Shown here piece after piece: positions 7,534 through 44,882 of a stretch of DNA of 64,000 bases. The stretch spans positions 8,246,001 to 8,310,000 of the forward strand of contig CM060734.1 of assembly GCA_030704615.1 (NCBI GenBank), given 5' to 3'. The first letter of the stretch is position 1. Every line of letters starts with the position of its first letter. The position numbers and the translations under genes were made by a program. The notes below the pieces were generated by a model. It was not told the origin of the DNA. It worked only from the letters and a program-made list of their open reading frames with translations, and ran no database searches. Source of the DNA: Takakia lepidozioides (lineage: Eukaryota > Plantae > Bryophyta).

Positions 7534-7534
7534 T

Positions 7535-15429: not shown

Positions 15430-16600
15430 GTGGAGAGGAAGTAAGGGGAGAATGAGCCTCCCTTGGCTTATATGCACCCCCCCCCCCCCCCCTTTCTCAG
15501 GCCACGCGCAGGACAAACCTTCTAGAAGCGACCACCCACTTGGCGGTCGCTCCATTTTCCGAAAATAAAATAAATAAGCGACCACCAGCATTCGCGGTCG
15601 CTACATTTACAGTGACATTAAGAATTAAAGCGACTGCCAGTAATGGCGGTCGCTTCATTTCGAAAGAAATTGAAATAAAATCGTCATTTATAAAACTAAA
15701 ATAATTTACAGCGACCGCCAATAATGGCGGTCGCTCCATTTTCAAAACAATTAAAATAAAAACAACCACTAGTAATGGCGGTCGCTCCATTTCCAACAAA
15801 ATTAAAAAAAAACGACCGCCACTAATGGCGGTCGCTTCATTTCCAAAATAATTAAAATAAAAACGACCGCCAGTAATGGCCGTCGCTGTATGTACAAAAA
15901 ATGTATTCCCCCCCCCCCCGCCTCATTCCTCGCTCCACGCGCAGGGCAGACCTCGTAGAAGCGACCGGCACCTTCGCGGTCGCTCCATTTAAAAAATAAA
16001 TAAAAAATGATCGTCACTAATGGCGGTCGCTCCATTTCGAAAATAAAAAAAATAAAAGCGACCGCTAGTAATGGCGGTCGCTGCATTTTCTAAAAAAAAA
16101 AAACTTCAAGCGACCGCCAAGTAATGGAAGTGAGGGGAGAATGACTCAGAGCTTATATGCCCCCCGCCCCCCCCTCATTCTTCGCTCTACGCGCAGGGCA
16201 GACCTCGTAGAAGCGACCGCCACATTGGCGGTCGTTCCATTTAAAAAACAAAAAAAAACGACCGCCACAAATGACAGTTGGTCCATTTCGCAAAAAAAAA
16301 AAAAAAAACGACCGCCAGTAATGGCGGTCACTGCATTTACAAAAAAAAAAAAACTTCAAGCGACCGCCAGTAATGGAAGTGAGGGGAGAATGATGGCGGT
16401 CGCTCCATTTAAAAAACCCAAGAAAATGACTGCAAAATATGGCGGTTGATCCATTTTCCAAAATTAAAAAAAAAACGACCGCCAGTAATGGCGGTCGCTG
16501 AATTTACAAAAAAATAAAAAACGACCGCTATTACATCGCGTTCGTTGCATTTTCAAAGAATAAAAAATAAATGCGACCGCCAGTGATGCCAGTCGCTGCA
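15430..16600. repeat. Left array of GCGACCGCC-N5/6-GGCGGTCGC hairpins with A-rich spacers
   Basis: Roughly 18 palindromic units at ~50-60 bp spacing. A higher-order unit (poly-C...cgcgcagg..tagaagcgacc) recurs at ~15477, 15907 and 16160. Confidence 0.9.
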
Positions 16601-17545: not shown

Positions 17546-19850
17546 CTAGAAGTTCATCACCCTTAAGCTCCATTGGGGCACTACCGGTGGCTTCAGCGTG
17601 TAGTGGGGGGCGAGGGTCGACCCCAACTTCATTCTGAGGACCATGTTCTGGGGATGACACAATTGCAACTTCACCTTCATCTGCGACACGTACTTCCTCA
17701 AGAAGGTCATCAAAGGTCGGCTGGATATAAGCATCCTGCTCTGTGAACGTAAATGGGTCATACGCATTTTTGGGAGCATCATCGGATCCATCTTCACTAT
17801 CAGAGGCAGATGATTTCCTCTGAGATGATCTTCCCTCTGAAACTCAGTATCATCACTCATCGAATCTACCTCAGAAGCAGAGTCTTCGGAATGCAAATTC
17901 CTCTCATACCATGCTGCATCATCATCCGCTGCCCTCTCACGGAGCAGTCGGCAATTGGTATACACATACACCAATTTGTCAGCCATCGCGGGATTCAACC
18001 TGTTGCGAATCTTGTTGTGAACAAATGAGTAACTGCTCCAATTGCGTTCGCAAGATGAGGCAGAGCACACTTGAGCAAGAATACGCTTCGCAATGGGAGC
18101 CAATGTTCTTGCTCCAGCTCCAATCAGATCCCACCATTCATGTGACAACATATTGAGCTCTTTTGGATCCGGCATGCCCTCAAAAGAGTCGCGGCGATCT
18201 GAGAAGCATTGGTACTCGGATATAGCTATCTCTGCAATGTTCGGCGGAGTCAGTCACATGAGCACTCGCATGAGGCCGGCCTTGGCATCAGCGTCGTCTC
18301 GGAGCATGGTATTATCGAGCAAAAATGGATTGAGCAAAACACCCGCATAATTAAGTCTGTTCGATCCATCGAACGACGGTCATAAAATGCATCCGAAGCA
18401 CTGTCCGCAAGTTCAGGTTCCAAGGAGAATGGAGGATGCTTCAAAGATTGGACGTGCTTATCAAGATTTTGCATTAGTAACCATGCCTTGCCCATTACTG
18501 ATTGCTTTCCATCAAACTCCCGCAAGACGATTAACACCGGCTCTACCATATAAACAAAATTTTCACATTTCTTCTAGAAATCATCGCTCCGAATGCTATT
18601 CCGAACTTTTCGACTTTTGCCCAATGACTTGGCTTATCTGGAGTCCCGCAATGTCCGTGTGTACGCATCCCATTGAGGATCGATGATGGTGTGCTCTAGA
18701 CTGCTCTTCACCGTCACCAACCGATCCACCATCAAGAAGTTAGTGACAAAACAAGTTTCGTCTGGATTTCCTATATATTGCCAAAGGGACAGTGTGCGGA
18801 TGAATGACACAACGGTCTTTGCTCGCTTGACAAGTTGTTTCACCCACTGTTCTTTTCCCCAATCTACCAAAAGGAGGTCAAAGAGCAGCACAACCTTGAT
18901 AGTACATATGAGGATAACGTGCCAACAACATGTCTGCAGTGTTTCTCATGTTAGCGGCATTGTCTGTGCATATTTGCACGATTCTATCACGTCCGACCTG
19001 TTCGATGAAGTCCGTCAATAGTTGACATTGATAATGTCCATCTTTCTTCTTGCCGCTAGTGTCGACCGATCTCAAGAATTGTTCCCCAGCTGGACATACA
19101 AACATGACATTGAACAATGGTCTGTTTGTAACAGAACTCCAACCATCGGCACATATAGTGCTTCCACATTTTCTGATGCACTCGCCCGTCCTATCGTTGA
19201 CCTTTTGGGTAAGCTCGGTCATGACGTCTTCTAGCAATCATGTGCGGAGATTATGATAAGTCGGAGGCACGTACGTGGATCTGGACTCCGAGGTTGTTCT
19301 AACGGCAGAAACAAATGTTGGAAGCCTTGCCATATTAAATGATATGTTGGTCTCGAAGAAAAACAACGCCTATTTTTTTATCCAACTGCCTTTTTACAGA
19401 CAAGTTAAGACCTTCTTGCATGGATTGCTGCCGTAATCCTCTACTCCGTTGAAGTGTAGGGGTACAAAGATGTGTTGAAGCAGGTGTTGCTCCGGCTCAA
19501 CCCACTTGTCCAAGGACACCTGAAGCCTCACAAAAGTCGCCTTAGGTACTAATCGGGGCATCCTGACGGGAAGATGAAATGTTCTGCTCAGAGGTCATGT
19601 CCAGATCCAGAGACATTGGAATATTGCCTCCACACTGGGCAAAGTGGTTTTTTACCCGCATAGATGTTTTATGGCATAAACCCACCCCAGCGCTTTTCAC
19701 ACCTCTATAGCCGATGTGAGCGAACAACCGATCCTTACGATAAGAAAGCTTTAATCCACATAGGTTGCACTCAATACAACCAGTGATACTGATAGTGTTC
19801 GAGATTGCCGTATACCAAGGGCTCCAATCCTCCCTCATCTTCACCCAATA
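17546..19850 (-). mobile_element. hAT transposase pseudogene (BED finger, DUF659 core, C-terminal dimerisation domain)
   Basis: CNLC...RLFAH (BED finger); TICADGWSSVTNRPLFN, QICTDNAANM and CAA (DUF659); WWDLIG..LAPIAKRILAQVCSASSCERNWS (hAT C-terminus). Several frameshifts and stops. Confidence 0.92.
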
Positions 19851-20950: not shown

Positions 20951-21579
20951 TTCATTTTGTTGATTTTCAAAATGTATTTGCCACCGCCACCGTGTCGGCG
21001 ACGTGGCTGCTTAAGTAGCAGTATTTTACCTGGTACTATTTTTATCAGAATATTCCCCGAACTTGACGTGACGGAGGTCCCGTCAACGTCAGGTCTGACA
21101 TGACCTGACGCTGACGAACGGACGTGACGTTGATAAGCAGGAGTCCCACCATGTCAGGCCCTCAACAGATCGAACGACTTCAAGGCAGTAGTTGTCTTCT
21201 CGAGATTGCTGACAGGCTCCTGGTGCACAGGTGCCCCGGTTGCTCGACCCCTCAGCTGTTCCTACTCCCAAGAAACCACCCACCAAATAAAAGCTTTCAG
21301 CTCCCTTACAAGGTAAGAGGTGACAGTGCCTCAAGCTGTGTATGCCCCATGCTTTATCCTAAGCATCACAAGCTGACCCTTTATCACTCTGTGGAGCGTC
21401 TTAGACTATATGCGTTCGCGCCGACGCTGTTCAACCTTGCTGCGGATTACATCAACACGGACCTCCCTGGACAGGCTTTGCTACTCTCTCTCCAAAGGTA
21501 CATGTATAATTTTCAACATAGGTATAAATCTCACCCCCCCTTTCTGGAGACACCTCCCCCCATCTGTATCTTGTTTATC

Positions 21580-21940
21580 AAGATGATTGCAGGATGTGGT
21601 CTGCATGGTCATAGTCATGGTGCTTTCGAACTCTTTTGGCAAATACAAAGAGAAGGCATAAAGGCAGATAAGGTCATTTTTATTAGTATCCTCGGCGCAT
21701 GTGCCAGCCCAGCAGTTCTGGAATATTATAAATGGAGCAATTCGGACACCATCAAAGTTGGAATATTTGAGTCAGATTTTGCTGTGGAGAACACCCTTGT
21801 CCACATGTACTGGAAATGTGGGAGTGTGGCCGAAGCTCGACTAGTGTTTGACAGAATGCCTGAGCGAAACATTTTCTCCTGGAACGCCATAATTGCAAGG
21901 ATTTCTCAGCAAGGGCATGGTGCAGAGGCACTTGAACTAT
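21580..21940 (+). pseudogene. PPR (PLS-class) gene fragment
   Basis: MIAGCGLHGHSHGAFELF.QIQREGIKADKVIFISILGACASPAVLE...NTLVHMYWKCGSVAEARLVFDRMPERNIFSWNAII. Confidence 0.88.
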
Positions 21941-21944
21941 CAGA

Positions 21945-22076
21945 TATACTTCAGCTGGCTGCAACCACACCCCAACGAAGCATCTTCTATGGAGGGAGCA
22001 TTCATCCCTGCTTTGAGATGACCCCTGGTTTCTCACAAATGAGCATCAAATTGGTGGGCGTCTCTATTGAAACTGA
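21945..22076 (+). pseudogene. DUF2921-family gene fragment fused in frame to the PPR fragment
   Basis: LQLAATTPQRSIFYGGSIHPCFEMTPGFSQMSIKLVGVSIET is clearly homologous to 54860-54983. Confidence 0.6.
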
Positions 22077-22784
22077 GTTTAATTGGCAAGAGCTTTGTCA
22101 TATCATAGGAATAATCTCCCTCTAGAAAATATTATGGACTTGGAAGGAAATTCATCATGCAATCCCGTTATGCAATGTTATTTAAAATATCCGGCTTTCG
22201 AGTTCATCTATAGGAAAGAGGGGCAAACCACGCGCAATTCAATCTGAAAAAAAAATTTCCAAAAAAATCAATCAGAGGATGAGTTGCAGTTTTTGCGAAA
22301 ATGAAATCCACATTGTGCAAATGCGGCGCCGCATTTGCACGCTGAGGCCCGAGTAATGGTCGTTAGTGGGCCTAAAACCGCAAGATCTGCACCTATTACC
22401 GCGGAATGCGGTACCTTATTTCCAGGACCTTGATCCAATCACCCCACATCTGAGTGATTTTTCTATGAGCGCAAATATATATTCATGTTGCGCACCTCAC
22501 TTCGGTAAACTCCCCTTCAAGTCGTATTTACTTGCTTTGATGTGCTCTCCTAACTTCCAAATTGGCCGCTGGGCCAATTCGGAGCTTTGGCTGCTCACCG
22601 GGACATAACTGTCCGTCTTGCTCCTCCACTAGACCCTTGAACTATGGGGCCCAATGGAAATTCCCTTCAATTGTTATAGGCAGTCCGGAATAGCTCCCCA
22701 CACTTTGGTCGCTCTCCGGCTCGCTCGCTTGTTCTCTAGCTTTTGGTCACTTAACGGGTTTGCACTGTTCTTGGGGGTTACTAC

Positions 22785-24290
22785 TCCCTGTCAAACACAT
22801 GGTGTCTCCAACAACTTTGTTAATGAGCTAATTTCATTATTACACAAAGAACTCTTGCCTATTGGAAATTGTTTGCCCAAATCCCACTATGAGGCAAAAC
22901 AACTCATAATGGAGTTGGGGCTTACTTATGACAGTATAGATGCATGTCCGAAGGGTTGTGTGTTATTCAGGGGAAAAGAATTGGAGAAATTGGAGGCGTG
23001 CCCAAATTGCCAGTCCAATCGGTATCGAGTGGGGACAAAGACACGGGTTCCATGTAAGGTTCTTCGTCACTTCCCTGTCATTCCAAGGCTTCTACGTATA
23101 TACAAAGTAAAATCAATTGCAGAGTTGATGACCTAGCACTCTACGAACCGAAGTGAGAATGGGTTGGTGAGGCACCCAACAAACAGTAGAGCTTGGGCAC
23201 ACATTGACCAGACTTGGCCGGATTTTGTGGCGGAACCCAGAAGTATTCGATTGGGTCTTGCTCTGGATCTGGATGGAGTAAATCCATTTAGTGACACATC
23301 AACCAAATGGTCGACATGGCCTGTCCTTATCATCAATTACAATCTACCCCCGTGGTAATGCACCAAGGTTTTTTTTACAATGCTAACTCTCTTAATACCC
23401 AGGTCAGATTCAACTACGAACGCCAACGTAGACGTGTATCTGCAACCCTTGGTGGATGAATTAAAGTTGTTGTGGGAGGTGGGTGTTCAAGCAGTAGATG
23501 GATCGAAGCAGGTGGGAGAACAAACATTCTTCATGAGAGCCATTCTAATGTGGTCAATACATGACTTTCTAGCGTATGGGTTGTTGGCGGGGTGCAAACA
23601 TGGTGGATACAAGGCATGCCCAACTTGTGGCCCAACTGTTGATTCTAGGTACTCCAAGGCCTGTTCTAAAATGTTGTATTTGGGTCGTAGAAGGTATTTG
23701 CCTGCGGATCATCCGTTCAGATTTGATACTACATATTTCAATGGGGCTACAGAACATAGACCAGCCCCTATAATTGTGACTGCAAGGGAGCAATTTGATC
23801 GTGGCACAGATACTGCATTGTACATTGCAAGGGGCGGAGCACCTAATGGGCAATTCTTCCAAGAAACATGGGATGAAGCGTGCCACAGTGTTGAATCAAT
23901 TGCCCTACTGGAAAGAACTTCTGATCCGATACACATTGGATCCTATGCACTGTGAAATTTTTTTGTGTGAAAATGTGTTACAAACTATTTTTGGAGACAG
24001 ACGCAGCTACGTCAAGGAAAGATATGGAATTATGTGGTATTCGTCCACATATGTGGCTGAAACCTCATCCCACAGCAGCAAACAAGCTCGTAAAACCGCT
24101 GGCCCCATATGTGCTCACTGAAAATGACAGGAGCATCTTTTTGGAAATAATATCTACCCTAAGAGTGCCACTGGTTATGCTGGTGCGTTCTCCAAGCATG
24201 TGGCAAAGGGCAAGTTGTCTACCATGAAATCTCATGACTACCATGTCATGATGCAGCGAATTCTACCATTGGGCATTCGTGGGCTACCGT
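22785..24290 (+). mobile_element. CACTA/EnSpm TnpD (Transposase_21) pseudogene
   Basis: LPKSHYEAK, IDACPKGCVLF, KVLRHFPVIPRL, LGLALDLDGVNPF, STWPV..NYNLPPW, DVYLQPLVDEL, WSIHDF.AYG, LDPMHCE and MKSHDYHV. Contains stops and frameshifts. Confidence 0.93.
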
Positions 24291-24562: not shown

Positions 24563-24616
24563 AAAAAGATAAAGATAAAGTTTCTTTAACGTCCAGTGAA
24601 TTTACAGAGCCTACTG
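24563..24616 (-). mobile_element. 5'-truncated SINE/LINE 3' tail
   Basis: Reverse complement of 37693-37747 (cagtaggctctgtaaattcactggacgttaaagaaactttatc...). Confidence 0.7.
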
Positions 24617-25588
24617 CCAGGTAGAGAGTAAAGAGCTGAACACCTGACACGTTGCCTCCTACATTAAGTATCGATGCTATTTATACCTGCTCCACCATGT
24701 TACCCTAACTAAATTTTACTTTTAATTAATTCTTAAACTCGCCCTGAAATCGAAGGTACTAAATCCAATAAAATTATTGAAAATATGAGTGTAAGAAGAT
24801 TGCACTGGGCCTGCAGCAACGGCAACTTAATGTTGCCGCCACTAACTGGGCACACACAAGGCTAAGTTAGATCCAGGTACCTATTTTCAGAAATGGCATT
24901 GAAGAAGCGCAGGGCGAAATGAGCCGAAAGGATTGAACTCGCGACAGGTCGTTGTCGATACGAGCGTTCTTGTCCGCTAGCAGCATTCTCGTCTTCCCTC
25001 CGCGCTCCCGCACAAATGCATGGTCGCTTGCACATCGCTGCGTGCAGGCAGAGTTCCGACGCCGTGCCAGCGCTGCATTGTTGCTGTATGTGAAGGGGGA
25101 GAGGGCGGAGGTTCTTCTTCGCTTGTCTTGCACAGTGTGGCCGTGATATTATTTTTTGTTCTTCTTCGTTTTCCGAGTGAATACATTTTCGTTCCTTGCC
25201 ACCACATGTTTGTATCTGTAACGACAATGCAGGTGTGTGGAGGCAGGTGAAGAGTGTGACGCGAATGTGTAATAGGACGACGGGGGTTCTTTGTTTGTTT
25301 TGTAGATTGTGGCCGTGTTTTTTTATTGTGTTTGCGGAGGGAAAGATATTTTAGATGCGGCCACATGTGTGTATCTGTCAAGGCAATATAATGTATCCCG
25401 GCAGGTGCAGTGAACGACTGGCAATCGAGGTCGGGGGTGCACGGGTAGGGAAGGCGTCACAATGTCCAAGCATTGCCTGTGCGGTAGGGGGTTCCGGGAT
25501 GACGGGATGAAGCCGAGGAACTTAAAGAAAGAAGAGGTGTAGATCTTCGTCGAGAGGAAGATATCAGAGTAGCGTACTTGGAGCGGTG

Positions 25589-28348
25589 ATGGAGGGAGGC
25601 ATGGTATCTGTCAATGGCAGCATTGCGTCGTCAACGAGTGCTTCTTTTAATCTCCATGGCCAAGTCAGAAACCTTGTCTCTGGACTTTTCTTCTCTTTGA
25701 TATCTTTCTCTTCATTCTTCTACGGATTCTGTTCTTGTTACTTATCGGTATGCTATCTTTGCTTTGGTCTGTGGGGTATGTTGGCCGTCAATGTGGCCGC
25801 CCCACTTTCACACGTAGGATTGCAAGCTCTGTTCGCAGATAATGCATCCAAGACAGCTCTTTTTATCGCTAAATTTATGCGGATTCTATCGGACGTTAAC
25901 TAGAGTATTTTGAGTCTGCTCTTGTTGTCTCGCGATACTTTATCACGTTTGCTCTCCTTCAGTAGATTCCTGGATATTAGCCGCTTGGCAAGCTGTCTTT
26001 CACTTTATGCTTCTTTTGCATTGTGCATCCCTTTCAGACATATCCTTCTCTCGTTTCCTTTCTCAAAAAGTCCCAAGGACGACTCCTCGTAAATTGTCTC
26101 GTTCTGAAACTGTTGCATCCTACGTACCGGATTCCTTTTAGGCCGCCTGGAAATAAATTGAGGCTGGAATGGTTTGCTTGCCTTACTAGTCCTCAAAGGA
26201 TGCCTTGAGAAGCGAGATAACGATGTGTGTGTAGGAGATCTCGATAATGTCCAGGAATGCAGGTGCCCGGATCCCAAAAACTGCTGTGAAAGGCCCTTAG
26301 TTTGTTACTCGCAGTATCCTTTTGTGTGGTAGATGGGAACTGTGGGGTCTGTTAGATGCTGAAGTTTTCTGCCTGCTACATGATTAAAGAGCGCTTGCAT
26401 TTGGAGCAAGTCTCTTTCTGCGGTGTCATGCCTAAGCCAAAAGTTGTTTTTTTCCTTAGTGGCACGTTTTCAATGCTGTGTTATGTTTTTCTACTCAGGT
26501 CTTCTAGCATCTGCAATCCTGAAAATCTCATCTTAGAAGGGAAAGCAAGCGCTCAGACTCTTCTCGTCAGTTTGATTTGTCCATGTAAAGAAACAGGGCA
26601 TCTGACCTCATACATTGTTTGTCCACAATCAACAAAGATGAGGTGCCTGGAGTTCTTCATCTGATTTGTTAGAAGTCTGCCTGTGGTTTGCTCATTGACC
26701 TTACTAAATCAGAACCTGATTATGAAGGTGTATGAATCACACAATTTTGGAAGAAGTGTATATTGTGTTCTGAGTAAATATTACTTCATCAAACTAAGAT
26801 AGTCTTCCTCCTCTATTTGTTCAGTGCAAGGAAGAGCTTATCTTGCAGTGGATTGTTGTTTGTACCCTCCTGAGATAGTGTCTGGTATGAGCGGTAATTT
26901 CTTGGTAAGTGTGTTAATGATGGAGTGTGTGCACACAGAGTTTCGATGAGATGAGGGATTTGCTCATGTGTGCAACAATGGAACTGGAATCAGCACGAAC
27001 AGCAGCAACAGCTCAGGGCCAACTTCATGAAGCGCGCGTGCGTCATTTGCAGGAAATTTTGAAGACAACACGGCGGGAGAGGGATGAGGCACGCAAGCAG
27101 TATCACCAGTTGCAGGAGCAACTCTTGCGTTCACCTAGCTTGAATGGCTCTGGCCTTAGTGACAGTCTGCCGAACACAGGATTGGCAGCTGTGGTTGAAT
27201 CAGCAGCAGATGCACATCATCACCTAGAAGAGCTTGAGGAGCACCTGGAGCTCAATGAAACCCACCATTCTTCCTCGCATGCACCCCTGGTGCACCATGA
27301 CCAGCAACTGGATCATTTGGAGGACCCTGTGCAGGTTCTCCATCACCTGGACCTTCCATCCCCAGATGCACATTCATCGCTACCTCCTCTGCCCCCACTG
27401 CCCCCGCTTCACTGCCCCAGTGAGCAGTGCTCCTTGCATAGCTTGGATGACCTCCAGCAATCCTCTTCACCAGTAGCTCTGCAGCACCAGCAAGGACAGC
27501 ACAGCTTGCAGCGCCACCACCGTCACCGCCATCAACTTCTCCAGCACAGTTCAGATGAAGAACTTGAGCATGAGTCTGAGCAGCTCTTGTTGCAGATGCA
27601 GCAACAGAGCGAGCAGCAGCTGCAGTCTGGGCAGCAGGTCCTAGTGCACCAACAAGCCATGCATGAGTCGCTAGTCAGTATGGGTGCCATGTCAGTGCTG
27701 CAGCATTCGACATGGCAATCTCTACCTGGTGGGGGTGCTGGATTTCCTCAACCAGGCATCTGCTCACCACCCCTTTCAAGTCTAGGGTTGCAAACTGCTT
27801 GCCTTCACAGTGGCTCTGCAGTGGCCTCCTTGTTAAGCCCCCTCAAACCATATAAAACTGTAGGCTCGGGTCCAGTGCAGCTGCATCTTCCAGAGCCACC
27901 AGAAGCAGACCTGCAGGTGATGTTGAAATCCTTGCCAGAGAAAGGGAAGCTCCTGCAGGCAGTGATGCAAGCTGGGCCTCTTTTGCAGACTCTGCTGGTA
28001 GCTGGCGGCCCCCTTCCGCAATGGCGACATCCCCCTCCAGCACTAGATACACTGGACATTCCCCGTGTGTCCATGTCCTCCTCAACTCCTTGTGATTCCC
28101 AGCCCTCAGTCAACAACATCGGTCGAATGACCACCGGTACTCTTGAGCAGCATGGTGGCATTCATCCCTCACCACCTATCCCCTCCCAAGAAAGTAGCCT
28201 CTCTCACCTTTCTGTACCCCTTTCAGTTCCAACCACCCCAAATAGTTGCTTTGCTTCTCAGGGCATCCTCCGTGTCAGCAGCATGGGCCACTTGGCCCCA
28301 GATATGAGGCTGTTAAATCCACCCCTGAAGTATGCTAAGATTCACTAA
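25589..28348 (+). CDS. DUF1635 family protein, join(25589..25663,26939..28348), 494 aa
   Basis: N-terminal coiled coil (SFDEMRDLLMCATMELES...RERDEAR) and C-terminal LPEKGKLLQAVMQAGPLLQTLLVAGGPLPQWRHPPP are DUF1635 hallmarks. A phase-0 GT..AG intron (25664-26938) joins both exons in frame without stops. Confidence 0.9.
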
Positions 28349-30584
28349 GCCTCAGCTTGTACATCTACTCTAACTGCGGACCGTGCTCAAGCTGATTACT
28401 TCTGCGTTGGACAACCTGTCGTTTCGCAAAGGTGACATTTTTGCTAGCACTGGGTACGTTACACTTCCAACTGTCAATCTATGTAGCACAGAAAAAAATA
28501 CTTGCTCAATGGTGTCCCATTGGATGCCGCTGCCCAGCATAATGACATCAGAGCATTAAATTACTGTTGTACAGTAACTCTGATGCAGTTAGCGGCGGAG
28601 CTGGTTAGATGCAGACACTTTTGTGATTAGTGTTGTACTTTTAGCTCTTTGAGACAATTTATAATTTCTCAATGTTGAATCAATTCTTGCCCCTTATCAG
28701 ACCTAAATGTAGCCTGAATTGGATGTCAGTTTGCATTCTCGCCAGTGGTGTGCTCTATGATTGGGAGTTCAAATGCCGTCCCTCTTCTGAAGTTGTTTCT
28801 TGTTGCTGTGCTTTGTCCCGTAGGCCCTGGGCGAGCCCAATGGACATCATAATTTTGTTGCCTTTCACAACAGTTGCTACTTTCTTTTGACTTTTCATCG
28901 CCATAGGCTCTCTGGGCTTCGGTAGAGCTTGGGAAGCTTTCTGTTGGTGCAAATGCTTTTTGGTAGCATCAGGATGTTGCTTGATGGGTCCTCAGGTTTG
29001 TGTTGCGAAAATGGTGATTGGAGTCCCGCTTGGACATGAATCAGACATTGTCTGTGGCAGGATATGTGCTGCCAGGCAGGTACATACCAGGATGCATACC
29101 TGCATTGTGGCAAGGTGGATACTTCCATTGAGAGAGAGATCTTATCATATTTTAGAGAAGGAGACCATTATGGCACTCTTCCAAATATTTAAAACATCGC
29201 CCTTTCGCTTTTTCTAAACCATACCCCGGTGACCTGGGGTTTAATCCTTTTAACCCTTAAGCGCCCACTGGTCCCCGGTGACTTTTTCCAAAAACTTTAA
29301 AATGACAATAACATTCAGGGAAAAACCAATTTCCAAAAACCGATTGCACATTACCTGGCCACCTACCTCCTGCATGCACCTGCCAATTTTCAGGGCAATC
29401 AGATAAGATCCCGCCCGTTCAACGTGGGCCCATTTTTGGGCCCCTTTGCAATAGAAAATAGTTTCCAGGGAGCTTTTTGGAGTTTGGGGTGACGGGATGA
29501 AAGCAGAATCAACAATCTGCTGATTCTGCGACAACATCATCCCTGTGACATCCGTCATCCAGCGAACCAGTTTTTAGTGAATTTGGACATGAATTGTGGT
29601 GTTGACACTTGGCAAACGTCAATTTAGCTATGTTTTGTCAATTTAGCTATGTTTGAAGCAAGGTGAAGCAAGGTGTTTCCTTGTCTATGTCAAACCTGGA
29701 ACAAACACCTAGGAACCTGGAAACACATAGCAAAGCTGAAGCACAAAAAGCAGAGAAGATGGCACAAAGTGGGACCAGCAACGATTCTCTCAATTTCGAG
29801 ACCTCAGACTTGCCAAGCATTCAACAATTTGGCACATATGTGACAACATGGACAGTTCAGGGAGTCCCTATATCTGTCACAGCATCAATGCATGAGTGGG
29901 AGTTGTACCCATACACTACCCCAGCCGGCAGTTCACACATGACCAAGGGGGGAGATCCCCCCCGTGCACCCCCACTTGGCCATGGGACTAACACCTACGG
30001 AAAACTAGACAGAAGGAAAGAAGCAGAGCCAAGTGTAAGTAAGGAAAAATGTCACATTGAACTACAATGCAAACCTGAATTACGCGCTAAGGCTTCAAAG
30101 AAAGCACCAGCATAAAGCCACATACACCCAATGTAGTTAGTGTATTCAAATGAGATAGACACACCACAAAACGTAAATTGAGCGGGGAAGACACCCCTAG
30201 GGAATTCCAAAAAGGCCTTGATGTGAAATGCAGCGCAATTCACTTGATCAGATGCCAATTCAATTGAATTGCGATGCCATTCAATTGAACTAACCCTAAT
30301 TTGCAATTCAATTGAATTGCTGACTGCAATTCAATTGAATTGTTAATCTATAATTTTTAACGCAGTTTTGGTATATAATATATATAATATATATTAATAT
30401 ATTATCATGTATATGTATATGTATATGTATCGTATACAACATATACATACGAGAGTATAAGCTGAATATACATGCTGGCCCGTCTATTCCTGCTGCCCGT
30501 CCATCCTTTGCTTGTGGTAAGGCCTAAGTCACGACATGAGTCGCGTAGCCTAAAGAGGATATATACTACACATATATACTAGTA

Positions 30585-30840
30585 GAGGTATCGTCATTAG
30601 GTTGTAGCCCTGTTTGATATATCTACAGAGGTATAGTATATTTCATTTTACAAGAAAAGTTGGCCAAATTAATCTATATTTATGCGGAGGTATCGTCATG
30701 AGACAGTAGCCCTGTTTAGTATACCACCAGAGGTATAGCGCCTGACTTACAAAGAAACCTGGTCAAATCAGCCTATATGCAGGTTGAGGTATCGTTATGA
30801 GGTAGTTGCCCTGTTTAGTATACCTACAGAGGGATTGGCA
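30585..30840 (+). repeat. Three ~100-bp subterminal direct repeats
   Basis: gaggtatcgtcat.ag...tagccctgttt...ata..tacagagg at ~30585, 30688 and 30787. Confidence 0.75.
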
Positions 30841-31639
30841 ACGTACGCATTCTTATCTCTGTTTTTATCCCAGTCCTCGCTTGTTAGATTCTACAGTTGT
30901 TCATCGCGTAGCACTTGGCTACATGATTGTCTATTGTTTCTGGTTTACTCAATAAGAAGAGTGGGATAGAAATGTCAAGTGAGTTTTTCATGGTACGTGT
31001 CATGGTTGGGTGGACAGGAAGAGGCCAAGGAAGAGGCAGCAGCAGAGCTGACACATTTTGGTAAGGCAACCGTGTCCATCCTGAGTATGAAGGATGCTGC
31101 ACCCTCGGAAATACAATGCTTCAAGTAAGTTCAAAGAGCTTTCTTCTCTTTCTGGTGTGCTGGATATGTATGCGGAGGACAACTAATATCACCTTAGGTG
31201 CCAAGGGAGAAACAAACAACCAGACCCTATTTCATTTCATTTCTTTCTCTCTCTCTCTCTCTCTCTCTCGTGTTTCTCCCTGTCCTCTAGGAAGCCTATT
31301 GACATTGGGTGGACTTGAAACGTGAGTACATTAATGTCTCTGTCACTAAATGTCGGCCTTCTGACCTCGTGTCCTTGTTTGTTTCGACCTTAAGCGTTTT
31401 GCTTCAGGTAAGGTAGTGCATTGGATTTAGTTGGAAAGCTTGGGGCCTTTCCCTCTTTAGAATATGCCTACACGGGCCATTCCCTGCAACTCCCTGGAGT
31501 GTGATCTCTGAATGGTAACAAGCGGACTCCTACCGCTTGGGGGCAGCCCCTCCGCCCAAATTGGGCAGTCGTATGCTCTGTCTAGCATACTCGGCACTTC
31601 GGCTCGGGTTGGTTCCTGTGCTTAAACTTATGGCCTGCG

Positions 31640-32890
31640 AAAACAATCAAAAATTTAGCTCCTATCAACATCAACACTCCTCAGGGTGATCCCTGGGAAT
31701 TGGTTACTTATGCAAATCTAGGGCTTCATGTGTAGTTTTTGGGGTGAATCCCAGGATGGACGATGTGTCCTTTAAAACTACATGCTCTACCTTAGGCTTG
31801 GATTTCATGGTTAATGGTACCATCTCGAGACTTGATAACAGGGGTACGTTGAAGTTGCAATGACCAAAAGTGCTTCTAATAGAGTCCCCATCAATTCAAT
31901 CTCAAATAAGTTCGTCCGTGATTTCTTGTTTGACAATTGTGAAATTATCAACAAGGGTTTGAGGTACGAGCATAGTATCTGGCTAAAACTGAATTTGAAG
32001 GGCGGCATGAGTACTCTGCTGGACCTCTTTGTCCGTGTGTTTACATGCCCACAGAGGGACCCTGTGTGCTGACGCAGACAAGGCCTCACAAGTTTTGAAG
32101 CTGGACTGTGCTTCGTTCCTTGCCAAAGGTCAGGACTTCAATGCCTGGGTGGGCAAAGGGATCCATCAGGACGATATCATTGGACCTTTTGGTGAGGACG
32201 AGCTGAATTCTAATGGCAGACGGTTAATTAACTGTCTAGAAGAGCTTCAGCTTTTGACCTTGAATAACAGGACAAGAGGTGACCAAGTGCAGTGGACTCG
32301 TGAGAAACCCCAAACTGGGGAACGTTCCATTGTGGACTATATCATAATGGACAAATTTTGTTCCCCCAGTGTGCCGATGTGTTGATCGACAGAACTGATA
32401 TTGGTACCTCTGACCACTTGCTGGTTTGGACTGACATCAAAAGGTGTTTTCCCACCACCAAGAGATCTGTGAAACGTTCGATTCGGAAGTGGCGCATAGA
32501 AAAATTCCACAATGAGGAGGTCAAGGCTGAGTACGTCCAGGCCTTGCAAGAGGCTCTCCCTCATTTTGTCCAATCGCTCCAAGAACTTCAGTCACGCTCT
32601 GTTAACAATAAATGAAGTCGAAAGAGCAGTGGACTCTTGGGAGAGTTTCGTTTCCTCCGTGGCTGACAAGATCATTGGGAGGAAACTAATTGTCTGCGGT
32701 AGAGCAGTTTTTGGTGGACTAATGAGATTAAACTCAAGATAGCTGAGAGGAGCCCTCTATAAAGTGCTGCAATTTGGAAACCAACAGAGAATTGTGGGCG
32801 AGGTACTACCAGCTCCGTAAAGATATCAATCAGCTTGTTAGGTCTCAGAAAAAATTATACTGGGACAAGTTATACAGTGAAATAAAAACC
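31640..32890 (+). mobile_element. LINE ORF2 AP-endonuclease region (degraded), nested in the IS3EU-like element
   Basis: ININT at the start; DFNAWVG, NSNGRRL, SIVDYI and SDHLLV endonuclease motifs. Confidence 0.85.
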
Positions 32891-34009
32891 AAACCACCAT
32901 GGTGGTAATGACAAGAAATTATGCTTGGCCCTTCAACGTTTGTAGTCACGCTCTGTAGAGGTATTGAGCACAAGGGGAAGCAATATAACTTGGCATAGGG
33001 GCTGATATGGACTTGACATTGATCTTCCATGTGCACACCTCTCTCCATGTGCTGCTCATCCACCACTCTACCCACTGCCTGCGTATCGCTGGTTTGACTA
33101 AGTGACTGGTCACTAGATCACCAGTCACACCTTCATAGGAGTGGGCATGTGGCTTGCAAGTGTTGGGCTGCCAATAACAAACCCACTACAACGTTGCACT
33201 ACAACCATAATCTCATCACTATTGCAAAACTCAGCATTCATGCTCTCGATTCCCACTCCAGCCTTTCAAATTCCTCAACTTCCATTCAGCATCCCATGAA
33301 CCCCACATGCAGCCCGAGTGTTATTACAAGCACGTTATGTGCTTTGGTAAATACTGTTGTTGGAATGAGGCAAAGCCCTCAAACCTTGGCCAAATTTATG
33401 CAAACCTCCTTAAACTGCTTGTGAGCTAAATGGGTTTGATGTGCATGCCCAGGGCTAGCTCCATCTCATTTTTTGGGGGACCCTTTGGGAGACAGATGGC
33501 TTACTCAGAAGTGCTTCAGCTTCCTCTGATTCACTGGCAAAAGAAATATGGCTAGCTCTGAAAGAAACAGACAATTTCAAACCTCACAATTGATGAATGG
33601 CTTCCCCTGCATCATCATGTACTCCCCTGGCACTAGTATCTGGCCCCCATGACACAACCCCAGAGAAAACAAAAGACATGTTCATTTCGAGAATTATCTC
33701 CAATAATCTTGTTTCGATACCCTTACAAAGGTATCATGTTGCAATTGGGCTGTGTGTTCGATAGAGAGTTTAATATATCAACTCTTAGACGTTGATACTC
33801 TTACAGTGGTATCATGTTTGGTATATGTACATAGCCATATATTGGCACTATAAGGGCTTGGCAGTATGAAATTGGTTAGTGTCTCAAGGTGCAGATGAAA
33901 CATGCTAACATATTTAGATTGTAAGCAACACCCACCAGTCAAACTCATCCTCAGAAGAGATTGATACACAAAAATTTCTCAGGGTCGTTGGTGCGCAGGC
34001 TTTTGTCAA

Positions 34010-34090
34010 GGGCTTGATATCATCATCGGTCAACTCAAAGTCAAAGACATCAAGGTTCTACTTCAATCTCTCCATCTTGTCTGACTTAGG
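34010..34090 (-). pseudogene. Aldo/keto reductase C-terminal fragment
   Basis: PKSDKMERLK*NLDVFDFELTDDDI matches the IPKS...ER..EN..VFDF.L motif. Confidence 0.75.
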
Positions 34091-34434
34091 ATTTTTATTA
34101 CTGTATGCAAAATTCTTAGATTATGAATAGAGGGTTCTTGAAAATGAGGCAAGTTGGTCATCATTGTCTCATATGTGGGGCAGACAAAGATTGTTGGAGA
34201 TAAAAGGCGGCCTCATGAGCCTCACGCTGTGCACTTCCCAATGAAACCCAACAATTTCACAACCCTCCAAAGATCGTACAACCCAGGCCCTGCCCCCAAG
34301 TAGTATGGTTTGATGTTTAGGGTGTATGGTTCAATATGGACAATGGATATGATGATGACATTTATTTAACAGAAATCCTCAAAGTACGTGACATAAAATA
34401 ATTATCTTTGAATGTGATTGTCCCACTTATTCAG

Positions 34435-36173
34435 TTAATCACAATTACATACAAGAGCTTGTGTAATTAAAAGTTGGAGAGCTTCCCTACTTAACACGGT
34501 ATTACCAATGAGGTCCAATTGATCAAAATATCTATGTTCATGCGTTGCCAAACCCACAATACCGAGACATGTAGTAGTGGAGATGAAAACAAGAGATCGA
34601 ATCCTTCCCAACCTTTCCAATTTCATAAGCTTGTGCACGGACACGAACCATGTCAGGAATGAGTTCAGCTCCTTTGGTAGGAAGGTCATGCAAACCACCT
34701 GCACATCGCCACCTTTGATTCCCACGAGGCCCCAAGTCTTGGTTACCAATGTGTCGGGGGTCTTCCCTGAATCGTGGGTCATCAATAAGGTGGCTGGTCC
34801 ATCTACATGATCAAACACATCACACACATTAGAATAACATTCCAATGTAAATTGTAGCTTAACAAATGAAAGTACAAACAAGAGAAAACCATGAGCTTAC
34901 CCATGCAAACGTTCATACTCACGAAAGAAACGAGCAGGAACATGTGATCGACGATATCGACCGTTTTCATTAATCGTGCGAACTCGATGTCCATTCCAAA
35001 TCTTCACGTATTCATCAACAGCTTCTTGTAGTATGGGCATATATATGTCAATAAAAGATTCTCGTTGCCACGGATCGTCCATATCCAATAATCCATCATT
35101 GACCATTGCTTGGAAGCAATTTTTGTAGTAGAACATTACCTTCTCCCATAGATGCCGCCAAAAGTGTTCAATCCTCTAACGTGGTGATTACACCACACAA
35201 AGTATTAGGAATATGCACAACATTACACACTCAATGATTAATAAAGATGAACCAAGAAATATGACAGAAATGTAAAGTTGATATGCAAGATATAATTGTA
35301 TAGAACACTAACCTGATTGTGTGTAGAAGACCCAGTCAAGTACGGATTGGGTGTTTCAGAACGTGTGGCTTCAATGTGTTGTTTTATAAGAGAGTGCTCT
35401 ACTGCAAAATCAGATCGAATTCGTAAAGGTGCTCCAAACTTGGAAACTGCATCGTGATATCATTTGAAAATGGTTTTTTCTTTCTTGTTTCTTGCAACGT
35501 TCGCCCATAAAACAAAATGAGAGGCCCCATCAATGCCAGCATGTACTCGAAGTCCAAACATAACCAATTTGTCATAAGCTGCACCACGAATTGCACACAT
35601 GTTTTAGTTTGCCTACAATTTTGTGCGATATGTAATGCAAGAAAACGTCTTGCATGTGCATCTTCAAAGAACATTAAGATGCATGAGATAAAATACTTAC
35701 AGTCAATGTGCCATAGAGCCATAGGCATTGTCACATATACTGAGTCCTCCGAATTGCCTGTGCCCTTCTCCTACGCTCATAATGGTAGGGTGAGATGATT
35801 TTCAAAGCTTCCCCCACCTTCCTTCGAGGAATCCGCCAATTTGACCTCCTTAAGGCAGATTGCACTGTTCTCATTCCCCAATTTGTCCCATTCTCTTCAA
35901 TAGAAGTAACTCTTGAATCTTTTCACACAAGCGTTGGACACTCAATTGATGATGAACTTTGAAAGGAGACCCTTGGACTTCTGATAGCAATCTTCTCAAT
36001 GGTCGTACATCATCAAAAGAAAGGGCAGTGGCGATTGATTTCATTGTGGCACCCTCATTCAACATTGCTTCCACATAAAGTACTAAATCATCCACTACTT
36101 TGTCACCATCCAAATGGTTGTTTTCCATGCTCACATGATCTGTCTTATCTCTGCTTAATAGCCCCAGTGCCAA
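34435..36173 (-). pseudogene. IS3/rve-type DDE transposase (IS3EU-like) with spliceosomal introns
   Basis: Splicing GT-AG introns 35579-35700 and 35176-35312 gives LWHIDSYDKLVMFGLRVHAGIDGASHF...GAPLRIRSDFAVEH...GSSTHNQRIEHFWR...WNGHRVRT. One in-frame TGA near 35460. HTH-like N-terminus at 35871-36173. Confidence 0.85.
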
Positions 36174-37566
36174 TGCCTTCGACCTTGCCTTTGTTGTAAT
36201 TGTTTGTTGTTAATTCTGTAGTCACTGCATCCACTCACACATTCCCCATAGGACTTACGTCACTAAAGTTCACATAGGCTATCAAGTAGATGAACCAAAT
36301 GTACTTTGAAACAACAACTACTCTATCCTAAAATGTATTAGCAAACCACAGTACACAGTGTGGGCAGGTTGAAGACAAACCATGTGATCAAGCTCTTTCT
36401 TTCAGTGTGTGTGTTGAGGAGCGTTTGGTAACCCACTCTACTACCCCTAAAGTTCTCTCCTCAAAACTCATGAGTCACCTGCACGTACACAAGAACTACA
36501 GCTTTAGCTAAAATGATATCTTTATCAATGATTGGGGGAACTCATGCCAATATGGGAATGTGCTTACTCATGGGCAGATCTTGTCATTTGGTGATCCAAT
36601 AAGGCTTCCATCATACATAGCGCCACCACCGCTCCACCACCGCTCAACCCTAAACTTGTTGTTGCATTCTTCTCTCGTTACTTCTCTCTCCTCCAACTGA
36701 TTTGATCCTTTCACTTTTAGGGCACCTCTGCCCTAAAAACCCTTCATCACTTCATTTCTCTCTCCCTTTTCCTCGCTCTCGCTCTCTCTCTAGTATATAT
36801 CTCTCCTTTAGGCTACGCGACTCATGTCGTGACTTAGGCCTTACCACAAGCAAAGGATGGACGGGCAGCAGGAATAGACGGGCCAGCATGTATATTCAGC
36901 TTATACTCTCGTATGTATATGTGTATACGATACATATATATATATACATATACATGATAATATATATTATATATTATATACAAAACTGCGTTAAAAAATT
37001 ATAGATTACAATTCAATTGAATCGCCAGTTGGCAATTCAATTGAATTGCAAATTAGGTTTAGTTCAATTGAATTGGCATCGCAATTCAATTGAATTGGCA
37101 TATGATCAAGTGAATTGCGCTGCATTTCACATCAAGGCCTTTTTGGAATTCCCTACACCCCTTGTGCGGATGGATCCTTCACAACTCTGCAAATCAAAAC
37201 AACCCCATGGTAGTTAGAGTATTACCAACATGAATGCATACATTTACCGCCATCAATGCATGCTGTGACGCTTCACAAAACAGGTACCCAAACACACAGC
37301 TATGTCTCCACGGGCTTGACAATAGTACTTTTGTCTGCAACCACACTCCACACACTTTCTTCGCCTAGAACTTTTTAAGGAGCAATGTAGAGCTCCTAGT
37401 TTTGGGACTGAACTCCTTGGCTGGACTGTTGTCTTGGGACCAACCCACCCACAAGTCAGTCCATTGGTAACCTCTATGTTGAAAAGAAGATGTGATCTAG
37501 GGATGCGGCCCCTTCTTTTCACTACAACACCCCATGGGATTTCTAACTAGCGAGGTTTCACTATCA

Positions 37567-37749
37567 CTTGAGCAGGTAGCCGAGTGGTTGGGTGTTTGTG
37601 CCTGCCTGTGCATAACCTAGGTGATCCTGGGTTCAATCTTTCAACATGTTCCTTCAGACCGTCCATTGGGCCCTCCATGGCCTGTGTATTGAGCAGTAGG
37701 CTCTGTAAATTCACTGGACGTTAAAGAAACTTTATCTTATCTTTATCAT
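37567..37749 (+). mobile_element. tRNA-derived SINE
   Basis: A box TAGCCGAGTGG (~37577), B box GGTTCAATC (~37630), (TTTATC)n-like tail, and flanking TTTCACTATCA direct repeats (37556-37566, 37750-37760). Confidence 0.75.
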
Positions 37750-41908: not shown

Positions 41909-44882
41909 AGTATGATCGTCTTGTGTGGTCCGTATTGTACCCCTAGTTGTTGAGAGAAGTTAGAATCTCGCTTTGCTCTGCAAAAATTGCTTTTACTGTT
42001 CGTATCAAGGTCTTTTCCTTGGAGTTAGTAAGGTACTTAGGAGGGTTGAGAAACTGTGGTGTTCCCTGGTTGAGGTTACAGATCACTACTCCAAAATCTC
42101 TAGACTAGAGACATAAGTTGGTTTAACATCTGTGTAAGTTTCGACATGTTCATATGTTCATCATTGTCACTAAAGTCCAATGGAGCCCAAAGTAACTTGC
42201 ATGAATGTTGTTGAAAGCTTACTAACATTCATTTGTCACGAACTAGGTTAACAGGCATAATCAAGGCTGGAAATAGGGAGTCATACCAGAAGCTGAAGAG
42301 ACTTATGACTAAGCCAAGGAAGCAAAACAATTAAAATGCGACTGACATACTAGTATACATGTTGGGAAATGCTGTAGAGTTTGGAAAATGTTGTGGTGTA
42401 GATGCTTATATGCATGTCTGCTGACTAATTGAAAATGAGTGGCCGTGCTTTGAAAAAACAATGAGGAGGCTATCAAGGAAGATCATGTTGGTTCACAGGC
42501 TCTATGGAAGTTCAAACATTTGAGCTAGATGTGAAGATATCTAACATGCAGCACTATAGATGATGGTTTGGGATAACATATTAGGATCTCTTGCTGACAT
42601 TTTAGGTGCATTAATTTCTATAAAACAATTGTAAACCAAACATTTGCATATTTAATTATTGACTGTACAGTCAAATTTTGGCACTATGGTCTTCTTTTGT
42701 AGCGATCTGCATGGTTATTGTATTTACTATTGGATGAAATTTATAGCTATAGTGCGAGATTTATCTACTATGGATAGTTATGTGTTTCACCCAAGCTTGT
42801 GCAGTCAAATATTTTATTATATACCTCCCACTACCGCGTTCATTTCAGTGAAATTTTTATATAATCATAATGAAATATTTTCTCCCTACATTATACGATG
42901 GAATTTTCAACTAAGCCATTTCACTATATAGTGCTACATATAACAACAATTGCATACCTCACAGTCAAAAATTTCATTATCAGTATTATTCATAACCACA
43001 ATAATAGACTTTCTTACTAAATAAGAGTATGACACGTGGAATTTTACTCAACCACCATAAACCACTCATAGTTTCAATATTCACTATCGTAATCTCACTC
43101 ACATGGTAATTAGTTGACATGTGGCTCGTGTAGTGAAGTTGTTCACTATATGGATAGTGAAATATTTTACTATATATTACTGACCCAGCTAGACCACAGT
43201 GAAATAATTTCACTGGCACATTCGACTGTCTTTCCTTCACTGCATGCCCGAAATGACTCGCCCTTTGTCACTATCTGGTTTTATGGTAAAAATGGTACTT
43301 TCGACTATTTTGGCAGTGAATCAAATAGTCGAAAATCCCGCATCATTGTAGTGTTTCATGAAAGCAAGGTATATCAGGTAGGAGTTGACTAAGGCCGTAT
43401 CCACCGAGTGGAAGTACAACCTGTGCCACCACTTGTGGTCTTGCTGGATGGGTGTTCACATACTTGTGGGGATCAAAAAGTGTCCTAAGTCTAGATATTA
43501 TTGGAAGGCCACAAGCGAATTCTTCAAATGTCCTGCCATAACTTACATTATGAGTCATAATCGTTGTGAGGGGATTTTGCGTTGTCTTCATCTTGTTGAT
43601 AATGCTTCGGTGGTTGTAGATAGTACAACCCTTGGTTATGATAAGTTGGCCAAGACAAGGTGGTTGATAGATGCTCAAAATTTCTTGTATGCTTATCAAG
43701 TTTGGCAACCCGAGCAGAATCTGTGTGTAGATAAAATGATGGTGAAGTATAAAGGTAACTTGGTACTCTAAACTACAACAATACATGAGCAAGAAGCCTG
43801 TCAAGTGGGGAATTACATTTGGTGTTTGGCTGGAGGTACTTCAAGGTATGTGCATCAAATGGAGGTCTATCTTGGTAAAGAAGAAGATGTGGACTTGGCA
43901 CATGATATGGGATACTCTATGGTGATCAGGTTGTTGTCTGGATTTGAGGTAAAGGACCATATTGTCACAATGGACAATTTTTTCTCCAGTCCCTTATTGT
44001 TTTATGACCTTCCTGCAATTAGCATATATGCTACTCGTAGTGTGAAGACAATTTGTGTGGGATTCCTTTCATGTTTGAACTTGGGGAAAAGAGGAGAAAG
44101 AGGCAGACTTATGTACCAGATGCATATATCTAACAAGCTGGCTACATTATCTTGGTTTGATAACAAGTGTGTGAATCTTTTGAGCACTGCTGTAAGCCCC
44201 GTGGCTGAGAACTGCTTCATTGAGCGGTGGCACAATGGTGCCCGCCGTCTAGTCCCCACCTCCCCCATTGTGAAGCATTACCAGCAACACATGAGTGCAA
44301 GACGTGCAAGACCAGTTGCGGAGGTATTACTCAGAAGGGTTGCAGCCAACTTACTGGAAGAACACCCTTCATGCAGAGGTTTCAAAGCTTGCTCCTCGAA
44401 ATGTTGGGCAGAGGGGCCAAGGTCACATTGTTGGGAACCTGCCACCGGCTCGTGCATATTGTTGGCACTTGATCCATGCTTGCGAAGGTTTCATGCAGCA
44501 ATCGGTGCATGTCCACGCATTCATCGAGAGTCCCTGTGGCCCGCAAAGCGTCCTCCCCACAATTGCCATTTTCCTCTTCTGAGGAAGTATGTCCACTACT
44601 TTCCTATCCACCCGACTAGAAATGTCAATACATCTTTGTGAATGTGCAGAAGACATAGTATAACCACATGGCACGTTGCACAAATATCCTCACACCGCGT
44701 GGCAACCTGTAAAGCCAAACCTGTGAAATATTATACACTGATATAAGTTTACTCACACCCTTGGTGATTTCCCATAGTACGTGGAAATTGCCACAGTGGA
44801 CATGTAAGCAATTTCACACATGTATGACATATTTGACACTATCTAGTGTCCAAATGTCAATTCATATCCACGTGGCAATATA

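Follow-up and report, generated by a model that had tools for sequence, protein, structure and literature searches.

A structurally complete, coding-dead transposon of probable GingerRoot (IS3EU) type with a three-intron transposase gene in a bryophyte genome

Within a 64-kb stretch of moss-type bryophyte DNA, hereafter called the window, sequence inspection and repeat search delimited a DNA transposon of 6,958 bp at positions 30198-37155. We conclude with high confidence that it is a GingerRoot (= IS3EU) class II cut-and-paste element, structurally complete and coding-dead. Its boundaries and repeats are as follows:

30192-30197, no strand: left target site duplication CACCCC, read directly and identical to 37156-37161
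30198-30565, plus strand: left terminal inverted repeat (TIR), beginning TAGGGAATTCCAAAAAGGC (inverted-repeat pairs, alignment, blastn)
30255-30272, 30303-30320 and 30326-30343, no strand: 18-bp palindrome GCAATTCAATTGAATTGC, three copies in the left TIR (pattern search)
30546-30835, plus strand: subterminal repeat of ~100 bp in three tandem copies (direct-repeat search, 63-78% identity; blastn)
31840-32740, plus strand: possible decayed LINE-type endonuclease fragment in shifted frames (weak matches)
36796-37155, minus strand: right TIR (inverted-repeat pairs, alignment)
37008-37025, 37032-37049 and 37081-37098: the 18-bp palindrome, three copies in the right TIR (pattern search)
37156-37161, no strand: right target site duplication CACCCC, read directly

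CACCCC abuts each outer end of the element, whose termini read TAGGG...CCCTA, that is, TA...TA. A 26-nt terminal sequence occurs twice in the window, at the two element ends, with 0 occurrences expected by chance. The TIRs are ~360-368 bp long and 99% complementary over the outer 82 nt and 98% over the inner 127 nt; between these blocks lies an AT-microsatellite with indels, and overall identity is about 90-93% by alignment and blastn. The initial annotation had described near-identical TIRs of ~365 bp starting TAG, and TIRs of this kind are confirmed at both ends. It had also read CACCCC as a 6-bp duplication while allowing for 8 bp, and both readings hold for the window copy alone, where ACACCCCT can be taken as an 8-bp duplication with ends AGGG..CCCT. 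A complete relative of 8.7 kb from another assembly (L005; ENA ERZ25073694 ctg129010, locus 7293-15961) settles the matter at 6 bp, because its duplication, CAGGAG, is unambiguously of that length; its ends are TATGG...CCCTA, again TA..TA. The left TIR terminus of the window element fits a 19-nt consensus common to both elements, TAKGGAATKCCWAAARGGC. No paralogous empty site was found within the 64-kb window, and a 23-nt terminus was absent from metagenome contigs in an exact-match scan; a predicted empty-site allele would read GAAGACACCCCTTGTGCGG, with CACCCC once.

The 8-bp duplication readable in the window copy would suit a hAT-like non-autonomous element (AGGG..CCCT, ACACCCCT) enclosing an unrelated integrase-type pseudogene, and an open reading frame with a hAT dimerisation domain does lie elsewhere in the window (17546-18175). 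We nevertheless consider this reading highly improbable: a hAT domain was detected in 0 of 37 translated element stretches tested, and in L005 the same 19-nt terminus flanks a transposase gene of the rva_4 family at a site where the 8-bp reading fails. The combination of an 8-bp duplication with a hAT transposase, raised at the outset as an alternative, is borne out neither by the 37 stretches nor by the duplication of L005.

All six window matches to the palindrome GCAATTCAATTGAATTGC fall within the two TIRs (0 expected by chance), and in the left TIR the array has a 23-nt period as reported by TRF. We propose these palindromes, three per TIR, as candidate subterminal binding sites for the transposase. 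Further inside the element, the stretch at 31840-32740 gave Pfam matches to Exo_endo_phos_2 at E 0.14-0.16 and values of 0.84-0.86 to Exo_endo_phos clusters in a feature search, and reading by eye picked out motifs including SIVDYII and TSDH; these weak matches hint at a LINE-type endonuclease.

On the minus strand, three stop-free pieces match PF24764 (rva_4) colinearly (profile positions 18-52, 56-103 and 104-173), which bears out the earlier description of an intron-split, integrase-type DDE transposase. The gene resolves into six coding segments and three predicted GT-AG introns:

35701-36128, minus strand: N-terminal coding part, starting at ATG 36128 and ending ..PMALWHID (alignment to the L001 open frame)
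35579-35700, minus strand: intron 1, 122 nt, GT-AG, phase 1 (junction; same position in L001 and L005)
35313-35578, minus strand: exon 4, SYDKLVMFGLRVHAGIDGASH...RIRSDFAVEH...GSSTHNQ (PF24764 profile 18-52 and 56-103)
35176-35312, minus strand: intron 2, 137 nt, GT-AG, phase 0 (contiguous in homologues)
34901-35175, minus strand: exon 5, RIEHFWRHLWEKV...ERLHG (PF24764 profile 104-173, E 4e-13)
34803-34900, minus strand: intron 3, 98 nt, GT-AG (homologue comparison)
34538-34802, minus strand: exon 6, C-terminal, WTSHLIDDP...YMSRYCGFGNA followed by a stop (BLASTP)

Comparison with homologues, made exon by exon, supports each predicted junction. Removal of intron 1 yields LWHID-S-YDKL, which reads LWHMDSYDKL in the published GingerRoot SL_GR-020. 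At the site of intron 2, HNQ/RIEH is unbroken in P0001/L001 and P0004, and L005 has an intron there; at intron 3, P0010 runs RSHG/WSDHL without interruption and L005 has an intron at the matching position. Exon 4 is 54-55% identical to L001 and P0001 by tblastn, with a stop aligned inside the match, and exon 5 is 62% identical to P0001. By BLASTP, exon 6 matches P0010 at residues 70-154 (E 7e-13) and L001 at its final exon (E 5e-18). This C-terminal exon had been missed in the initial annotation, which counted two introns where we find three (35700-35579, 35312-35176 and 34900-34803). The three catalytic residues are all retained, with the first D at codon 35704-35702 in the N-terminal coding part, the second at 35411-35409 in exon 4 and the E at 35169-35167 in exon 5, giving a spacing of D-56-D-34-E. 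No zinc-finger Pfam match was found in the N-terminal pieces and their sequence contains no CX2C pair, so that an HHCC zinc-binding motif was not detected there.

An integrase-like fold and Pfam clan would also be expected of a remnant integrase gene, from an LTR retrotransposon or a Ginger-type element, caught between a local inverted duplication. For the homologue P0001, retroviral integrase cores and IstA ranked first in fold comparison, although weakly (Z 6.6; Foldseek E 0.09 or worse), a result of middling strength that also accords with the GingerRoot reading. An LTR-retrotransposon or Ginger origin is scarcely credible, however, given that Pfam and repeat searches of the element revealed no long direct repeats and no reverse transcriptase or protease, that the best Pfam family is rva_4 and not rve, that the motifs fit IS3EU/GingerRoot rows lacking HHCC, and that the inverted repeats stop exactly at the target duplication.

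Assignment to the plant GingerRoot group, which we base on Pfam, motifs in published alignments and unlabelled database relatives, is probable, and the initial call of a complete IS3EU-type element proved structurally correct in its TIRs, TA..TA ends, duplication and PF24764 core. Compared by eye with the alignment of Kojima, the window blocks LWHID-SYDKL, HAGIDGASH, RIRSDFAVEH and TGSSTHNQRIEHFWRHLWEKV match published rows of Selaginella lepidophylla GingerRoot (for example, SL_GR-020 LWHMDSYDKL, SL_GR-009 RVRSDFAMEHD and SL_GR-005 TGSSTHNVKIEAFWRHLYEKV), and by the same inspection the catalytic motifs lie closer to Selaginella GingerRoot than to animal IS3EU. In a profile search, the top matches were PF24764 proteins of fish, corals, anemones, mussels and beetles; in exon 5, animal proteins reach about 30-43% identity as against 60-68% for unlabelled plant-type fragments. 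None of the window open reading frames was found in the protein cluster collection.

The intact, highly similar ends, the perfect duplication and the full catalytic triad would all be compatible with an autonomous, recently active copy whose transposase is essentially intact but for one stop. We judge this very unlikely, because the frame that is uninterrupted in L001 is broken in the window by two N-terminal frameshifts, and exon 4 has an in-frame stop as well (35460-35462). Residues 11-78 and residues 74-110 of the single open L001 frame align in two different frames of the window, and the WHID block sits in a third, placing the frameshifts near 35886-35901 and 35734-35742; introns are excluded as the source of these changes because the shifted frames overlap in coordinates. 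The stop noted initially is real without being the sole lesion. With two frameshifts and one premature stop, the copy cannot make transposase; with both ends preserved, it might at best still be moved if an intact relative at another genomic site supplied the enzyme in trans. The earlier description of a recently mobile lineage is not borne out by this copy: its transposase gene is broken at three places, and similarity between TIRs is no clock for DNA transposons. Current activity of GingerRoot is not demonstrated by the window copy.

Among the relatives examined, L005 is the only complete element. It resembles the window element in the 19-nt terminal consensus, in all three intron positions, in protein sequence (58-63% identity across exons 4 and 5) and in having a transposase gene broken by stops, and differs in its shorter TIRs (about 80-100 bp) and in that a HECT gene (PF00632) follows downstream of its transposase. 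A HECT remnant was sought in the equivalent 4 kb of the element in the window, where 0 of 27 translated internal stretches gave a Pfam match, and tblastx of the window element against the HECT region of L005 returned no match. No flanking TIRs were found at L001, L006, L007, L010 or L011, and the related-locus search added three weak relatives (L002-L004), likewise without TIRs.

Established DDE-transposase biology suggests how such an element would move. The transposase, with an RNase-H/integrase-type DDE core and an N-terminal helix-turn-helix-like region but no HHCC zinc finger, would bind the element ends, where the three palindromes of each TIR may serve as its binding sites, and would then excise the element at its TA termini. 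Insertion would proceed through 6-bp staggered cuts whose repair would generate a 6-bp duplication, here CACCCC. The dead window copy would, at most, depend on transposase provided in trans by a relative whose gene is intact.

A single clade with 99% bootstrap support unites IS3EU and GingerRoot (Kojima & Bao 2023, PMC10045372). Selaginella lepidophylla, a lycophyte, is the plant in which GingerRoot was described, and it was also detected in 18 species of Bryopsida; for bryophytes, the 2019 evidence consisted of read-level DDE matches and not of full elements (Cerbin et al. 2019, PMC6839031). Published GingerRoots have TA..TA termini, 6-bp duplications, GC-rich target sites and sizes of 3.9-12.9 kb, and frequently carry foreign fragments (PMC6839031). 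The window element agrees with the Selaginella elements in its TA...TA termini, its GC-rich 6-bp duplication, a size within that range and internal non-transposase DNA, as well as in the DDE-core motifs DSYDKL, ID..SH, RSDFA.EH and TGSSTHN..IE.FWRH and the lack of HHCC, YPYY and GPY. It departs from them in its TIRs, which are 100-150 bp in Selaginella (PMC6839031) versus ~365 bp with three 18-bp palindromes each in the window, and in its bryophyte host; by eye, its transposase is ~40-70% identical to the Selaginella proteins in published core blocks.

Repbase IS3EU elements of animals and fungi, members of the same clade with TA..TA ends and usually 6-bp duplications (PMC10045372), share the WHxD, IDG, RSD-type and HNQRIE motifs with the window element; at the positions of ...ASH... 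and DFAVEH in the window and in Selaginella, animal IS3EU have ...GYSR... and D.G.EN. Ginger1, Ginger2 and LTR-retrotransposon integrases have a separate origin in Kojima's tree (PMC10045372). Together with prokaryotic IS3 and IS481, they share a DD(35)E RNase-H-type core with the window element, yet Ginger1, Ginger2 and LTR integrases carry HHCC and other motifs, whereas the window pieces belong to rva_4 and not rve. Prokaryotic IS3 and IS481 have ends TG..CA and duplications of 3-5 bp or other lengths.

A DUF1635 gene in the window has its best match in Sphagnum (51% identity at 98% query coverage), followed by Ceratodon (64% at 47% coverage); on this one gene, the host is moss-like.

Having been reported in both bryophytes and lycophytes in 2019, the superfamily is not extended here to a new major plant group. 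The element had initially been presented as a notable plant lineage of a mainly animal and fungal superfamily; GingerRoot is that same lineage, already catalogued in plants through its description in Selaginella and its detection in mosses, and the window element is an ordinary example of it. We found no description of a full-length bryophyte GingerRoot in the searchable literature. The 19-nt terminal consensus and three intron positions held in common with the ~60%-identical L005 element would fit a further, less probable reading, a bryophyte-specific GingerRoot lineage of long vertical persistence, in which the palindrome arrays of the long TIRs might offer multiple landing sites and dead copies might still be moved in trans.

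To our knowledge, standard plant transposable-element libraries usually omit GingerRoot/IS3EU. The significance of the present element beyond annotation is small, and its practical use lies in annotating GingerRoot/IS3EU in bryophyte assemblies: the 19-nt terminus, TA..TA ends, 6-bp duplications and three-intron transposase gene together provide a handle for recognising the superfamily in a moss-type genome.

A chain of inverted-repeat pairs detected by the repeat finder links 30198-30565 with 36796-37155, forming the terminal inverted repeats (TIRs) of the 6,958-bp element. Complementarity between the arms reaches 99% over the outer 82 nt and 98% over the inner 127 nt; whole-arm alignment yields only ~90-93% because the middle of each arm is an AT microsatellite carrying indels. 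The element begins with TAGGGAATTCC... at the left and finishes with ...GGAATTCCCTA at the right, and CACCCC directly flanks both ends (30192-30197 and 37156-37161). An alternative reading in the initial annotation, AGGG..CCCT ends with an 8-bp duplication (ACACCCCT), is indeed available in this copy through the junction T/A. Both window occurrences of the 26-nt terminus lie at the element ends, and all six copies of an 18-bp palindrome, GCAATTCAATTGAATTGC, fall within the arms (three per arm), with zero occurrences expected by chance in either case. No additional copies or fragments of the element were found in the window outside 30198-37155. The right flank (37693-37744) matches 24565-24617, 13 kb upstream, in inverted orientation over 53 bp at 98% identity; this pair is a small dispersed repeat.

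Scanning stop-free pieces of the minus-strand translation against Pfam revealed three matches to the 'Integrase core domain' family PF24764 (rva_4); they are colinear and cover profile positions 18-52, 56-103 and 104-173. The gene model was fixed with homologues from the representative library and their contigs, all transposase searches being made exon by exon.

Features inside the element (window coordinates; introns as predicted)
36128-35701, minus: coding segments E1/E2/E3, beginning at ATG 36128, with two frameshifts (~35886-35901 and ~35734-35742)
35700-35579, minus: intron 1, 122 nt, GT-AG
35578-35313, minus: E4, with an in-frame stop at 35460-35462
35312-35176, minus: intron 2, 137 nt, GT-AG
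35175-34901, minus: E5
34900-34803, minus: intron 3, 98 nt, GT-AG
34802-34538, minus: E6, terminated by a stop codon
within 30566-34537, between left TIR and gene 3' end: three subterminal repeats, ~100 bp each
within 30566-34537: (TC)n tract
~31840-32740, plus: frame-shifted pieces weakly resembling LINE-type endonuclease (Pfam E 0.14-0.16; Atlas 0.84-0.86)

Removal of intron 1 produces LWHID-S-YDKL, the counterpart of the published GingerRoot motif LWHMDSYDKL. The position of intron 2 is spanned by an uninterrupted HNQRIEH in two homologous proteins, P0004 and P0001 (the latter from locus L001, ENA ERZ25073694 ctg131066), and that of intron 3 by an uninterrupted RSHGWSDHL in a third, P0010. 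Within the single open frame of L001, residues 11-78 match one window frame and residues 74-110 another with overlapping coordinates, so the window frameshifts represent genuine disruptions of the gene, not introns. The catalytic residues are retained (D 35704-35702, D 35411-35409 and E 35169-35167), with a spacing of D-56-D-34-E counted on the read sequence. The two-intron, one-stop gene first proposed thus survives in outline; the homologue comparison and the L001 frame add to it an intron, an exon and two frameshifts.

In L001, intron 2 is missing and the N-terminal part contains an additional interruption, so intron content varies within the group. Its GingerRoot-type transposase gene (9362-11007) has exon blocks that read without stop or frameshift and lies ~4 kb from an RPL4 gene. 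No inverted repeats were found within ±10 kb of this gene, which may have been immobilised or domesticated.

A close relative, P0005, sits on a 75-kb contig of the same ENA assembly (L005, ERZ25073694 ctg129010), where inverted repeats at 7293 and 15961 enclose an rva_4 gene and delimit an 8.7-kb element. tblastx between the window and L005 recovered the same exon blocks with gaps at the same three positions, in agreement with the junction reading, and the L005 transposase gene is broken by stops. The L005 ends read TATGGAATGCCAAAAGGGCC and TAGGGAATGCCTAAAGGGCT, and CAGGAG directly flanks both. Here the 8-bp alternative fails (CCAGGAGT ≠ ACAGGAGA), which establishes a 6-bp duplication with TA..TA ends. 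Across the window and 11 fetched loci, the degenerate terminus TAKGGAATKCCWAAARGGC matches exactly only at the four ends of these two elements. Two divergent elements thus share conserved ends around transposases of one kind, which argues that the window TIRs are the enclosed transposase's own sites. A hAT element that had captured an unrelated integrase-type gene was ruled out by the conservation of ends around the rva_4 genes of both window and L005. Elsewhere on L005, 162-1330 holds a 304-nt inverted repeat (99% complementarity, 561-nt spacer) that looks foldback or MITE-like.

The L005 element carries a HECT gene (PF00632; 13469-13924) downstream of its transposase gene, of which the window element holds no trace in Pfam scans of translated stretches or in tblastx against L005. 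The weakly supported LINE-like pieces at 31840-32740 may have arrived by nested insertion or through capture. No reverse-transcriptase part was found in them, and an endonuclease without reverse transcriptase is the reverse of the usual LINE 5' truncation, making capture by the GingerRoot element possible.

IS3EU and GingerRoot form one lineage (99% bootstrap); complete IS3EU families always have TA..TA ends and usually 6-bp duplications, and GingerRoot, whose ends are TA..TA or, in rare cases, TG..CA, also duplicates 6 bp (Kojima & Bao 2023, PMC10045372). We set the window motifs beside named rows of the supplementary alignment of that study, by eye on the published text. The window blocks LWHID-SYDKL, HAGIDGASH, RIRSDFAVEH and TGSSTHNQRIEHFWRHLWEKV resemble Selaginella rows SL_GR-020 (LWHMDSYDKL), SL_GR-005 (HGAIDASSH, RVRSDCAVEHE, TGSSTHNVKIEAFWRHLYEKV) and SL_GR-009 (RVRSDFAMEHD), whereas animal IS3EU rows carry GYSR and D.G.EN at the places matching the ASH- and DFAVEH-type blocks. 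By this comparison of motif blocks, the window element belongs to GingerRoot as narrowly defined, the plant group. Searching with a profile of window pieces and relatives brought up PF24764 proteins from fish, corals, sea anemones, mussels and beetles, all animal groups with reported IS3EU/GingerRoot elements. In fold searches with the P0001 AlphaFold model (pLDDT 75), retroviral integrase cores and IstA rank first with middling scores (Foldseek E no better than 0.09; VIA Z at most 6.6), which fits an integrase fold without deciding the matter.

The surrounding region is TE-rich. For a DUF1635 gene (26927-28348, plus; 473-aa open frame), the top-ranking proteins come from mosses, with 51% identity to Sphagnum magellanicum across 98% of the query and 64% to Ceratodon purpureus across 47%; liverworts, lycophytes, ferns and seed plants follow. 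The host is therefore a bryophyte and most probably a moss. A host PPR-repeat ORF occupies 21124-22125 (plus). Other ORFs encode a CACTA-type Transposase_21 (23380-23955, plus; E 5e-37), a hAT C-terminal dimerisation domain (17546-18175, minus; E 3e-7) and, in 278 aa, a piggyBac-type transposase domain (PF13843 DDE_Tnp_1_7; 43805-44641, plus; E 6e-15); to our knowledge, piggyBac-like elements are not usual in land-plant TE catalogues. The ERZ25073694 contigs hold plant nuclear genes, among them one for PsaD; its top PDB hit is 8htu_D, which we take to be a Physcomitrium photosystem I entry.

The initial annotation had named earlier cataloguing in plants as an outcome that would refute it, and the family is indeed already catalogued there: Cerbin et al. 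(2019, PMC6839031) described the superfamily as restricted, among plants, to bryophytes and lycophytes, with DDE matches from 18 species of Bryopsida and 3 of lycophytes, among them expressed copies in two mosses, and a 2022 paper lists GingerRoot among eight plant DNA-transposon superfamilies. In Selaginella lepidophylla, 77 intact copies span 3.9-12.9 kb, with TIRs of 100-150 bp, GC-rich 6-bp duplications and gene fragments in 29% of copies (PMC6839031). No full-length bryophyte GingerRoot element was found in the searchable literature. Collectively, the window element is a real GingerRoot/IS3EU transposon, with complete ends and coding-dead, in a moss-type genome, and its modest additions to the family are long TIRs with palindrome arrays, a conserved terminus and an intron structure.
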